DNA of 64,000 nt from Zygnema circumcarinatum SAG 698-1b (taxonomy: Eukaryota > Plantae > Zygnematophyceae): NCBI GenBank assembly GCA_037447605.1, contig CM074805.1, forward strand, positions 2,203,361-2,267,360. The letters are read 5' to 3'. Below, in pieces: positions 41,306-49,528 of this stretch (position 1 is the first letter of the stretch; every line of letters starts with the position of its first letter). The notes under the pieces were generated by a model. The model saw only the letters and a program-made list of their open reading frames with translations, made no database searches and was not told the origin of the DNA. Position numbers and translations under genes: made by a program.

Positions 41306-41443
41306 GGCACACTCCCTCCGCAGGTGTTACCCTGGTCAGGTTCTAAGGGACTCTCTCAGCCTGCCACATACAGCCCCAGCAACATCCTGCCACAGACTGT
41401 GGTCCGGATGTGCTGCGCTGATGCAGCAAGCACCCCTGGTGCC
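41306..41443 (-). ncRNA. TPP riboswitch aptamer in the THIC 3' UTR
   Basis: Minus strand GGCACCAGGGGUGCUUG-[long P3]-CAGGCUGAGAGAGUCCCUUAGAACCUGACCAGGGUAACACCUGCGGAGGGAGUGUGCC. All TPP core motifs present, closely resembling the land-plant THIC aptamer, ~490 nt downstream of the stop. Confidence 0.97.
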
Positions 41444-41930
41444 ATCCATGTCAGTACACAAGAAGAGCAATATGTGGCCGACCATCCCATTCAACTCATC
41501 TGCATAGCAGATGCTCCTCACGTCGCGACGCTTACAAAGATGTTCCAGACACGACCATTTGCTACTCTAGGTGGACTCAACTAAAGAAAGATCCATGCAT
41601 GCTTTTTTACACTTGTGCAGAACAGCTGTTCACTACAAGCTTGAACTGCTATCCACGCCAAGTCTCCCGAAATCGCAGGAAGTCAAGTTTGCTGCATCCG
41701 AGCCATTGAGATGCGGCACCTCCGCTCTCCACCTCCCGATTCTGCAGCGAGGAGGACAACAAGACAAGCTTAACTTCAATGAAATGTAGAGAATGCACAC
41801 ACAATAATTTGTGGAACAGCAAATCGAAACACGCCTCTTTCAAATCCACTTGCAACCATGTTAAAGTAGGAGTAGAGCTCTATCAAAAGTTGGAATTAAA
41901 GAAGCCCCCTTTACCTGACACAGACTGTCT

Positions 41931-44900
41931 CTAGTTGACCTTAGCAGCATCTGAGCCAGATATGTAAGACTCAGGCAGGTAAATTTCTCCACCCTTCTCC
42001 TGCTCGCCGCTGAACGTCTTCCTGACTGTCAAAAATTGAGCACTCATTTCCTCCATTCCCCGCTGTGGCACGACAACCAACCAAACAACTAAAGGTTAGA
42101 ACAGGCATCGATTGTAATTAAAATTCTGCCAATGGCAACAAAACAAAGGAGCTGGTGAAAAAAAAACCTTCGTTACCTGAAGGGCCTCCTCTGCAGTGCC
42201 GTATCCCTTGGCTGCTGCATACTTTCGAATATCATCGGTGATTCGCATAGAACAGAATTTTGGACCACACATGGAGCAGAAATGTGCAAGCTTGGCTCCA
42301 TCGGCAGGAAGGGATTCGTCATGAAGGGCCTGTAACGTCACGGTGACAATGGCATGAGGAGAAATCAACTATGCTGCCCACTGCATTCACTTTAACACGC
42401 TAAATGATTCAAGGCCACTTACATGCATCGGACATTCTCCAAATTTGCTGAAGTATTTGCACTTTCTCTCCTTAAGCCTTATTCTTGAATGCCAGGTCTT
42501 GATGAGATTCTTTGAAAAGCAAGAAAAAAAAACACAGTCATCCAAGATAACCAGGCGCATACCATTCAGTCATTCACAGCTAAATATCCAGGAATAGGAG
42601 GAATCTCAGGTCATAGAACCCAGAGATTTCAAATGAAGTGAAGAAGTACCTGAGCCGTAGTAGGATCGAGTGAGAGGGCAAACTGGTCCCTCCAGCGAAA
42701 TTCAAAACGGGCTTTGCTTAAAGCATCATCCCATTTCTGAGCCAATGGATGCTGTTTTGCCAAATCAGCTGCATGGGCTGCAATCTTATAGGCAATTACC
42801 CCAGCTTTCACATCATCACGATTTGGGAGTCCCAGATGCTCCTGAAACACGAAAACGGAAATGCAGCCAAATTAGCATGGAAGTCAGAAAAAATTTTATA
42901 GACGAAAAGTAGAACGACAGAAAACTCTGTGATTAATCAAGGGACGGTTGCCGCTCAGCAGAAGTCAAATCGAGTGAGAGAAACATGCCTTCGGCGTGAC
43001 ATAGCAAAGAAGAGCAGTGCCAAGTGCACCAATAGTGGCAGCACCGATGGCTGATGTAATATGATCGTAACCAGGAGCAATATCAGTGGTGAGCGGGCCC
43101 AGTGTATAGAAAGGAGCCTCATTGCACCAGTCTAGCTGTTTCTCCATATTCTCCGGAATCTTGTGCAGAGGAACGTGGCCTGGGCCCTCATTCATCACCT
43201 GTGGGCAGAAACCACAAAGTTGATGACTAGCAGGGGTCGGAGTGACAAGTAATTCAGAGCATTGCCACAAAATCAACCATCACTTGAGGTTGAAAATCCT
43301 ACAAAAAGTAGGAGCATACATGAATCGACAAACGTACATGATTACTGTCCTTATCTAACTGAATAAAATCCGAGCAAAATCACACGATAATCTGTGATTG
43401 ACATCTTGAAGCAGCAGCGAATGAAACAGAGAAACTCTTTAGTCTCAGGGCCACACTGCGTAGCACTACGCTCTAATGAAAATTCTTAGAACATAGAGAC
43501 AACATATGATACATGGAACACAAATCACAAGTGCAAGCGCCAACAAGCAGGGGACGTAGAACACCACAGGACCATTAGCCGAAGTTACGGTAAAGTAGTA
43601 AAGGAAGTGTTCTGTTAACGTTATGGCGTACAGAATAAGTGGGCTGCTTGACAATGAGTCAAAGAAGTCTCACGACAAGGGTCCGTACCTGCACATCCTT
43701 CTCCCATGCTCTGCGCGTCAATTCTCCTTGGACTGCCAACTCTGAGAATTGAGCAATATCATTTGCATCGTAAATGGATCCAGGTCGAAGTCCATCACCA
43801 ATGGACAATGAGATGTCGTATTCTCGGCAAATATCAAGAATTTCATCCCAATGCTCGTATGCAAAATTCTCCCGATGATGTGAAAGACACCATTTTGCAT
43901 GAATGGAGCCACCTCTAGAAACAATTCCTGTCATCCGGTTGGCAGTAAGAGGAATAAACCGCAGGAGAACTCCGGCGTGAATCGTGAAGTAGTCCACTCC
44001 TTGTTCAGCCTGCAGAGCAGCACAGTAAAAAAAAAAAAAACCATGTTATCAATCCTGCTAGGATACACAGATGCTAATGGAAGGGAAGGCTCTTAACATC
44101 ATATTGTGGTTGGTATCTAAAAAAACTAGTGAAAGCAGAGTTCATACTGTTGAAGTTTTGAGCAATTTCGAACGACCACAGGGACAGAATGAACCTAGCA
44201 GAAACCATTACAAACAGATCCATACAGACTGTCACCAACCTGTTCCAGAAGCGTTTCTCGGAAGATCTCCCAGGTCAAATTCTCTGCAATTCCATTGACC
44301 TTCTCTAGAGCCTGCCGCAGGAACACAGGAAAACACTCAGACAGCCTCCAAGAGAGTACGTAGCTAAGACAAGATAATAGACAAAACACCCTTCAGATAA
44401 TGCAATTGGAGGGAATCATCGATTACCTTTTGAACACGCAATTATTTTCTTATGTGGACTTGCAGACATTGGACCAGATGAGAAAATAAGTAAATACCTG
44501 ATAGATAGGCACAGTGCCGAGAGGCACCGGGGAATTCCGAAGAATCCATTCACGAGTGGCATGAATGTGCTCCCCAGTGGAAAGGTCCATCACAGTGTCA
44601 GCTCCCCACATAGTGGCCCACTGTAGCTTCTGTACCTCCTCTTCAATAGTGCTTGAAACAGCAGAGTTTCCAATATTTGCGTTCACCTGCAATATCGCAA
44701 ACAGTATCAAATTAAGTAGCAGTCGATCCTTTCACCAAATACTTCCTTCCAGTTCTCCTCTCCACGGAGTTCAGCCATAATTATTTTACTGTTTTCGTTT
44801 TTCTTAGCTCTTTCTCATCTTCCTCCACTCTCCTCTCTCTATCCAGCCTTTCCCTGTCGACTCCATTTCACATCTACGATCCTGCAATGCATCGTCAGTA

Positions 44901-46578
44901 CAGCCAAGTTAGCAGAAACAAACGTACAAAAGGCGCACCTTGACAAGAAATTTTCGGCCAACAATCATAGGCTCCAGTTCCAAATGGCGCTTGTTTGCAG
45001 GGATGATTGCCCTTCCTCTAGCAACCTCCGAACGCACAAACTCAGGATCCATGCCCTCCCGTTCAGCACAGAATAACATCTCCTCTGTAATAATGCCCTC
45101 CTTGGCATAGTACTGCTGCGTGAAGCATGCATCTCCGCGAGCTTCACGGCGAGCGATCCAGTCCCTCCTCAACTTAGGAAGCCCTGCAAAGATGGAAAGT
45201 ACTCGTATCGACAACGGGAAAAAAATGTCAACAGGTGACATACTGGCAAGGAGAACGCACCTACCAAAGAAGCCAAGGCTGATGAAAATGATTAAATGAT
45301 ACATACGACCATTAAAAAAAGGGTAAGAAAAAAATGAACCTCTACTGAAATTTTTTCAACCAGTTCATGTCAAGGAAGCAGTTTCAATTTAACAGAACAA
45401 GATTTTTTCCTCTAGCCGCAAAGATTTCACACCCTGGAGGATCACACTACCCAGAAGCTGCTGCTTGGGAGCTCACGAACAACACGGTTAGAAAGACTGA
45501 AAATACCACAAAGGATAGAACCTAGCGCGAGATATAGTATAGCAGAGAAAAAAAGTTTAAAGCAAATGCATGACAAACCAAGCCTCAAAAAAAACCACAC
45601 GAAGAGAGGTGAGAGAGGGGGTACCAACGCGAGGGTCAACATTTTGTGCGCCACTTGTGTCATAAAGGTCAAACGGCGGCTCGCCTCCAGACAGGTGAAC
45701 CCGGCGGAATGGAACATGAAGGATGGCTCCGCTTTCAGCGTGGCGTGTTTCCCTGTTATCGAGAAGGTACAAGCACATCACAAACACAAAGGTATAAACT
45801 TCCACAGCACGTTGTACGCACAAGGAATCTACCGTAAAAGCAAAGGAAATGGGATGTAGAACAAGTATAACATTCTTAGATGGAAAACACCAAAACGGAA
45901 ACGCCACCACGAATACGTGAATGTGCAGGATGAATGAATACGTGAATGTGTGTGGATGTTAGGTTGTTACATTTATAAACTAGATTAGCTGACACGCAAG
46001 AACGTGCAAAAGAGTATCCGAACCAGAAAAGATTAACAGAGTCACGGGCCATAAATCAAGGAAGCACCATCCACTGCACCCAACACAGCGTCAAAACTGA
46101 AAGAAAGCACCATCCACTGCACCCAACACAGCGTCAAAACTGAAAGAAAGCACCTTCCACTGAGCACGTCATACGTTCAAATATTAATCCATGCGTCCAT
46201 CCGCTATTACCTGAACTCTTTTGAGCTTGAAGGGAAACATTCATCAAAAGTCGGAATTGGAAGGAAATCCGGACTTGCAGGATCCACTGTCACAGTAGGC
46301 GACGTAAACAATGCCTTCTTTTGCAGAGTTTGGCTTTCGCCTTCCTTCTGGTACTTTTCTGGGGCCGCAATTGCTTTCACCACTTGCTTGCGATGCAGAC
46401 GAAGTCCAGAAAGCTTCCTTGTTGAATTCAATTTCCTCTCCCCATGGAAGAACGAGGATGTCTTCACCATCGGAAGAACTTGTCTGCTTCCATCGCCGTC
46501 TTTCTTGCAGAGACTACTAGCAACGGTCCCTACATGCAAGACATTGGTCGCATCTATCTTGACAGAAGCAAGAGCCAT
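41931..46578 (-). CDS. THIC: Phosphomethylpyrimidine synthase (HMP-P synthase), plastid-targeted
   Basis: Ten exons: 46578-46211, 45752-45625, 45183-44939, 44686-44498, 44311-44240, 44009-43689, 43198-42989, 42841-42650, 42329-42177, 42062-41931. Motifs [63 protein letters not shown]-terminal transit peptide. Confidence 0.97.
46062..46163. repeat. 43-bp tandem duplication (about 2.4 copies) in THIC intron 1
   Basis: AAGCACCATCCACTGCACCCAACACAGCGTCAAAACTGAAAGA repeated. Confidence 0.9.
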
Positions 46579-49255: not shown

Positions 49256-49377
49256 TTTGTGGCACTAGGGGTGCTTGTCCTGGCGGGAAGGAGTGAACTT
49301 CTTTCTGTCAGGCCAGGCTGAGATTATACCCTCATCACCTGACCAGGGTAATTCCTGCGATAGGGAAGTGCTACAAA
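49256..49377 (+). ncRNA. TPP riboswitch aptamer 2 downstream of THI1
   Basis: UUUGUGGCACUAGGGGUGCUUG-[15-bp P3 hairpin]-CAGGCUGAGAUUAUACCCUCAUCACCUGACCAGGGUAAUUCCUGCGAUAGGGAAGUGCUACAAA, with an 11-bp P1. Confidence 0.95.
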
Positions 49378-49410
49378 GTGGTTCTAACCTGGGAGTGGAT
49401 GTGCTCAAAA

Positions 49411-49528
49411 GCATCGGCACTAGGGGTGCCTTCTCTGGTGGCAGCCTGTTGGCTAAAATCAGGGAAAGCTGAGATCATACCCTCAATACCTGAACAGGAT
49501 AATGCCTGCGCAGGGAAGATGTCGATGC
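49411..49528 (+). ncRNA. TPP riboswitch aptamer 3 downstream of THI1
   Basis: GCAUCGGCACUAGGGGUGCCUUC-[P3]-GAAAGCUGAGAUCAUACCCUCAAUACCUGAACAGGAUAAUGCCUGCGCAGGGAAGAUGUCGAUGC. Confidence 0.95.

Follow-up and report, generated by a model that had tools for sequence, protein, structure and literature searches.

To our knowledge, no riboswitch class other than the thiamine pyrophosphate (TPP) riboswitch has been confirmed in eukaryotes, in which stacked riboswitches are almost unknown. GAL1-GAL10 of yeast is a divergent gene pair on a bidirectional promoter. When TPP binds in plants, a 5' splice site becomes accessible, and the splicing that follows removes the normal 3' end of the transcript and leaves a long mRNA that decays (PMC10226581). 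In plants and green algae, this splicing uses an AG in P2 of the aptamer as its acceptor (PMC9544697). THI1 of non-seed plants has already been described as carrying a riboswitch (PMC11521341). In bacteria, the response becomes steeper when switches for a single ligand stand in tandem; only one triple is included among 213 tandem TPP representatives (PMC9481103). Two TPP aptamers have been described for Saprolegnia NMT1, and 5' plus 3' riboswitches for Micromonas CCMP1545 (PMC5882874, PMC4260697); these were the only other multi-aptamer eukaryotic TPP genes that we found in the searchable literature. Here we describe a 64,000-nucleotide stretch of the genome of the alga Zygnema circumcarinatum SAG 698-1b (contig CM074805.1; the whole stretch is called the window) in which THIC and THI1 stand head to head, with one TPP aptamer after THIC and three after THI1.

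THIC and THI1, which start the two branches of thiamine synthesis, are a real head-to-head pair of intact, expressed genes. The ATG of THIC lies at 46578 on the minus strand and that of THI1 at 47298 on the plus strand, with 720 nt between these divergent starts. The coding regions are arranged as follows.

41931-46578, minus strand: THIC coding region, 10 exons, about 669 amino acids including a transit peptide
46578-46211, 45752-45625, 45183-44939, 44686-44498 and 44311-44240, minus strand: THIC exons 1-5
44009-43689, 43198-42989 (GC donor), 42841-42650, 42329-42177 and 42062-41931, minus strand: THIC exons 6-10
47298-48762, plus strand: THI1 coding region, exons 47298-47912, 48084-48383 and 48598-48762, 359 amino acids

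The spliced models were searched exon by exon, and exons were joined only to check frame and length. Five THIC exon segments matched the Pfam family ThiC_Rad_SAM, and the exon layout corresponds to that of Closterium THIC in all 10 exons. THI1 has a single stop, retains the catalytic Cys motif and matches Pfam Thi4; its first intron is common to Closterium and was not found in liverworts. The closest THIC relative in our searches (P0405) matches at 79-99% per exon after exon 1 and groups with Mesotaenium and Closterium in trees, which were built from one window exon or from natural database proteins as proxies. A hornwort or bryophyte origin was rejected because exon layout and trees both indicate Zygnematophyceae. 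Intron 7 of THIC (42988-42842, minus strand) is a GC-AG intron, predicted from frame and homology. THIC intron 1 contains slightly more than two copies of a 43-nt unit at 46063-46163.

Transcript evidence came from the transcript-like contigs of four RNA studies, compared over window positions 44000-49950; the THIC 3' untranslated region (UTR) lies outside this range. These contigs do not show strand, and their depth is no measure of expression. Six introns are spliced in them, namely THIC introns 1-4 and both THI1 introns. The contigs delimit the following features.

46579-46737, minus strand: THIC 5' UTR, unspliced, minimum extent (contigs end at 46672-46737)
46738-47256, no strand: shared spacer free of transcript coverage, 519 nt, 56% GC
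47257-47297, plus strand: THI1 5' UTR, minimum extent from RNA contigs
48763-49950, plus strand: THI1 3' region, unspliced and continuous across all three aptamers in contigs of four studies, extending past 49950

The gap between the divergent transcripts is at most 519 nt, meaning that they start less than 1 kb apart. The original prediction had placed THIC (minus) and THI1 (plus) head to head with ATGs about 720 bp apart, and the intact, spliced and expressed gene models bear this out. It had also called the pair an operon-like unit. An operon would produce a single polycistronic transcript; here the genes lie on opposite strands, appear in separate contigs and are divided by an uncovered gap. 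The description has to be replaced by one of two separate divergent transcripts. AG motifs before the ATGs had suggested introns in the 5' UTRs of THIC or THI1, which we rejected because the RNA contigs are unspliced there. We found no opposite-strand gene near the THI1 3' region, where the next gene is a plus-strand GH9 gene, and therefore rejected an antisense neighbor as the origin of the 3' coverage. Three of the four THI1 3' contigs extend about 4 kb past 49950 (window 49950-53000) through a stretch without a clear gene. This continuation probably enters the plus-strand GH9 glucanase gene, as a long 3' extension or as read-through. THI1 intron 2 is retained (48371-48613) in low-depth contigs of at least two RNA sets.

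The prediction that both genes end in TPP aptamers, one for THIC and three for THI1, was confirmed by four Rfam matches.

41295-41447, minus strand: THIC TPP aptamer, Rfam TPP (RF00059), 56.1 bits, 480 nt past the THIC stop
48937-49058, plus strand: THI1 TPP aptamer 1, Rfam 53.3 bits (1 bit under the gathering score, E 2e-8), 21 of 21 stem pairs
49257-49383, plus strand: THI1 TPP aptamer 2, Rfam 60.5 bits
49412-49534, plus strand: THI1 TPP aptamer 3, Rfam 57.0 bits

The aptamers bracket the pair because the genes are head to head and the riboswitches are 3'. THI1 aptamers 1-3 lie in the transcribed 3' region, where RNA contigs span all three. In an alignment, the CUGAGA and GCG ligand-contact residues are invariant in all four aptamers. 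Each matches the covariance model from P1 to P5, with 18-21 of 21 stem pairs intact. The three THI1 aptamers differ from each other at 12-16 core positions, and their P3 hairpins are mutually unrelated but well folded (z -2.2 to -4.2). Because the binding residues and stems have been kept despite these 12-16 core changes, we conclude that the THI1 aptamers are old and maintained. Of the three, aptamer 1 comes closest to the THI1 aptamers of land plants. Contigs in all four RNA sets, with loose ends at 48939 and 49360, represent a fifth transcript with a TPP aptamer, which derives from another place in the genome. It also has CTGAC before its aptamer, and a thiamine transporter is one candidate for its gene.

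With its AG, branch motif and acceptor signals, each aptamer may constitute a separate splice cassette. The THIC aptamer has an acceptor AG at 41436 with a branch-point-like CTGAC 16 nt upstream, and splice consensus points to an intron just past the THIC stop.

41742-41914, minus strand: predicted first THIC 3' UTR intron, 173 nt, donor 17 nt past the stop, from splice consensus only

THI1 aptamer 1 has its AG at 48948, a branch-like CTGAC 16 nt upstream and a second predicted acceptor at 49082. In aptamer 2 the AG lies at 49268, preceded at 16 nt by a weaker GTAAC, and candidate donors are found at 49083 and 49147. Aptamer 3 has its AG at 49423 and a weaker P1; CTAAC occurs 37 nt upstream and no such motif occurs at 16 nt, and a pyrimidine-rich acceptor is predicted just downstream, at 49542. 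A branch-point-like motif 15-17 nt before the aptamer AG is present in seven of eight land-plant THI1 aptamers, against a background of 12 in 183 sites. The plant splice-acceptor signature is clear in the THIC aptamer and THI1 aptamer 1 and weak in aptamer 2, so that three of the four keep it. Gene-specific riboswitch feedback, which the original prediction proposed, fits these conserved signatures.

We compared the number of aptamers on THI1 across species. Closterium NIES-53 and NIES-67/68 carry two TPP aptamers on THI1, Closterium THIC carries one, and land-plant THI1 loci carry one per gene copy. The two Closterium THI1 aptamers show 9 differences from each other and 13-15 from the window copies. 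Two loop positions hinted that window aptamers 2 and 3 might each be the ortholog of one Closterium copy, which we rejected because the Closterium copies are mutually closer; the Closterium doublet may be a separate duplication. In Chara braunii (L050), THI1 is intronless with two evening elements upstream, and we found no TPP aptamer in the 10 kb downstream; a separate loss of the THI1 riboswitch is possible in this alga. Riccia fluitans (L002, 4174-11400) has two tandem THI1 copies, each with its own aptamer, of which the upstream copy is apparently mis-annotated or broken. The THI1 riboswitch itself is already known, and the triple is the new part. We found no report of the THIC-THI1 pair or of a eukaryotic triple TPP aptamer in the searchable literature, which did not cover subscription papers.

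The synteny check shows that the pair is not unique to this genome. A homologue of a THIC exon led to a 6.2-kb Logan contig (L058) on which THI1 and THIC stand head to head with ATGs about 800 nt apart, and a TPP aptamer begins after THI1 at the contig end. Its coding DNA is 72-79% like that of the window, with introns at different positions, and its proxy protein is sister to the zygnematophyte group but outside it in the tree. By these sequence comparisons we assign L058 to a distant streptophyte alga. In Mesotaenium endlicherianum, THIC (jgi 2530 / ME000161S01584) and THI1 (jgi 2531 / ME000161S01581) are very probably adjacent, judging from consecutive identifiers on one scaffold, which do not reveal orientation or distance. 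A related alga (L052) has no THIC in the 1.6 kb upstream of THI1, a stretch too short to decide.

The original prediction noted that head-to-head pairs are common in the window and held that a same-pathway pair is nonetheless unlikely by chance. Our gene survey agrees on the first point, as other divergent pairs, of unrelated genes, are common there. By our estimate, two given genes would be adjacent and divergent by chance with a probability of about 3e-5, based on the roughly 16,600 genes of Z. circumcarinatum (PMC9915684). This estimate and the recurrence of the pair elsewhere support the second point; one genome alone would be weak evidence, given many pathways. A plant biosynthetic gene cluster comprises at least three non-homologous pathway genes, and the neighbors of this pair are an Mpo1-like gene and the GH9 glucanase gene, so that it does not qualify as such a cluster.

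Motifs in the spacer make shared control of THIC and THI1 plausible. The spacer is short, no TATA box was found in its 519 nt, and CCAAT boxes point in both directions (46909, minus; 46927, plus; 47063, plus). It also contains an evening element.

46872-46880, minus strand: evening element AAAATATCT, full element, from a motif search

The spacer of L058 contains the 8-mer core of this element as well, in matching orientation, and the core occurred in 0 of 150 and 1 of 150 shuffles. The evening element times Arabidopsis THIC via CCA1/LHY (PMC9972560), and it was therefore an expected motif and not one chosen afterwards. In the paired state, one element could serve both genes. Five GTCGCA repeats lie at 47150-47202, just upstream of the THI1 transcript start, and are absent from the L058 spacer.

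We favor the reading, with a probability of roughly 0.58, that the locus is an old, lineage-patchy head-to-head pair with a bidirectional promoter and plant-type, splice-based TPP feedback that is stacked on THI1. The spacer probably acts as one bidirectional promoter, in which the evening element and CCAAT boxes would time THIC and THI1 together over the day; such shared control would be the reason that the link survived in several lineages. By analogy with plants, TPP binding to an aptamer would free a 3' UTR splice event, and this splicing would remove the normal 3' end and produce a long, unstable mRNA. We regard this mechanism as likely for THIC and THI1 aptamer 1 and put the odds at about even for THI1 aptamers 2 and 3. 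More tentatively, and at somewhat less than even odds, the stacked aptamers would act as independent serial switches (pseudo-cooperative) that give THI1 a steeper shut-off than THIC. THI1 is a single-turnover suicide enzyme whose renewal is estimated to cost 2-12% of maintenance energy (PMC9972560), and a sharper shut-off of THI1 than of THIC would make sense for so costly an enzyme.

Several observations weigh against this reading. THIC and THI1 lie on different contigs with different neighbors in Closterium, no THIC was found within 10 kb of Chara THI1, and the link is absent at the THI1 loci of Calypogeia, Riccia, Sphagnum-type contigs and Selaginella. The link is therefore dispensable. Several THI1 and THIC genes that are not linked also have the evening element upstream, so that it marks thiamine genes in general. 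Evening element aside, the window and L058 spacers share no more words than shuffles do, on which ground we rejected general spacer conservation. No spliced form of the THI1 3' UTR appears in the four RNA assemblies, whose contigs lose rare forms. The best duplexes between aptamers and upstream donors are not above shuffles (the best for THI1 aptamer 2 covers donor 49083, and 13 of 100 shuffles are as good), and such pairing is not significant. Predicted TPP aptamers can also be inert, as in diatoms (PMC9544697). The original prediction further proposed that the pair balances pyrimidine and thiazole supply. Two facts count against this role: Closterium and land plants run THIC and THI1 unlinked, and imbalance of the two branches did not explain the riboswitch-mutant phenotype in Arabidopsis (PMC9972560). 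An old linkage in algae that was lost repeatedly would be the simplest history.

The loss of the link in Closterium and land plants, the unconserved spacer, the other divergent pairs of unrelated genes in the window and the evening elements at unlinked copies also suit a passive old linkage. Here the genes would have been neighbors since an algal ancestor because a short spacer with interleaved promoters can rarely be broken harmlessly; no co-regulation would have been selected, and feedback would act via each gene's own riboswitch. In Closterium, THI1 and THIC have neighbors other than the Mpo1-like and GH9 genes of the window, and local gene order is therefore not generally frozen. The partner that was retained is, moreover, a same-pathway gene. 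We consider passive linkage improbable on balance. A further explanation, that the genes are chance neighbors in a compact genome or the relic of a transferred prokaryotic thi4-thiC operon, draws on the abundance of divergent pairs in the window and on prokaryotic contigs that carry thi4 near thiC (L040, L045 and L047). Against it, the pair recurs in L058 and, from consecutive identifiers, in Mesotaenium, and the closest relative of the window THIC nests among zygnematophytes. The prokaryotic cluster is same-strand (L040), and the ThiC of these prokaryotic contigs is short, 40-63% identical and without a match to the plant N-terminal exons; the pair is therefore not a transferred operon. Chance or relic origin has very little probability left and is largely refuted already.

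A different alternative concerns the stack only and is compatible with each reading of the pair. Only one THI1 aptamer may work, most likely aptamer 1, while the others are redundant duplicates or sense thiamine or thiamine monophosphate (TMP) as a logic gate. Aptamer 1 shows the complete splice signature and comes nearest to the THI1 aptamers of land plants, and aptamer 3 has a weaker P1 and lacks the branch motif at 16 nt. The two Closterium copies are more alike than either is to a window copy, which fits repeated duplication, and thiamine or TMP is the preferred ligand of some tandem RNAs of the TPP class (PMC9481103). However, all three THI1 aptamers keep every ligand-contact residue, intact stems and well-folded P3 hairpins, and dead copies would not be expected to be so intact after 12-16 core changes. 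Several THI1 aptamers also recur in a second genus. We regard a single working switch or a mixture of ligands as less likely than not.

Other features were noted in the course of this work. Two adjoining PLAC8-like genes lie at 11311-13422 on the minus strand, the first of which was confirmed by Pfam. Telomere-like short AAACCCT and GGTTAAA repeats occur at 50759-50912, in the gap after THI1. Outside the window, the low-GC prokaryotic contig L040 has a run of thi4, a thiE-like gene and thiC at 8168-11165. Identity to the algal enzyme is 66% for its Thi4, compared with 30-35% for the usual prokaryotic Thi4. Two Thi4 proteins of about 550 amino acids (P0142 and P0143) score like two domains in one chain, and one of them is labelled as from the amphipod Hirondellea gigas.

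The series of three, two, one and no aptamers on THI1 in this alga, Closterium, bryophytes and lycophytes, and seed plants, respectively, offers a natural test of sharpening by serial splice switches. Stacked THI1 aptamers could also serve as parts for algal and plant synthetic biology. Retention of a vitamin-pathway pair argues that streptophyte algae coordinated primary metabolism by gene position, a feature lost in land plants. The pair bears on the matching of THIC and THI1 output, a known limit in vitamin B1 biofortification. A broader reading goes further, and we regard it as speculative and rather unlikely to hold in full. Streptophyte algae, among them the lineage sister to land plants, would have run thiamine synthesis from an ancestral two-gene unit with one clock-timed bidirectional promoter. 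The number of riboswitches would tune each branch, with a splicing-based "digital" triple TPP switch on THI1; land plants would have broken the unit up and then cut THI1 from one switch to none.

The locus shares features with several described systems. It resembles the land-plant 3' UTR TPP riboswitch of Arabidopsis THIC and non-seed THI1 in its 3' aptamers, the AG at the P1/P2 junction, the branch motif 16 nt upstream, the predicted intron just past the THIC stop and the evening element upstream of THIC (PMC10226581, PMC9544697, PMC9972560, PMC11521341). It differs in having three THI1 aptamers where land plants have one, in the adjoining genes and in switching that is only predicted. The prokaryotic thi operon (thi4-thiE-thiC, L040) also encodes the same two activities close together, but its genes are same-strand and unspliced, whereas the algal genes are divergent, spliced, separately transcribed and of plant type. 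Like pairs of the GAL1-GAL10 type, THIC and THI1 are non-homologous genes of one pathway with a short, TATA-less, GC-rich spacer and separate transcripts. Here, shared control is only a candidate, the pathway belongs to vitamin primary metabolism of the green lineage, and RNA-level feedback would act on each partner. As in bacterial tandem (pseudo-cooperative) TPP riboswitches, several TPP aptamers lie serially on one mRNA, and each of the three on THI1 has candidate splice signals. They are eukaryotic, lie 3' of the coding region and are predicted to act on splicing and 3' end choice instead of termination. In Saprolegnia NMT1 and in Micromonas CCMP1545, a eukaryotic gene likewise carries multiple TPP aptamers. 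Those genes have two, which lie in introns of the 5' UTR or at the two ends of the gene, whereas THI1 of this alga has three, all of them 3', with a doublet on THI1 in a second genus.

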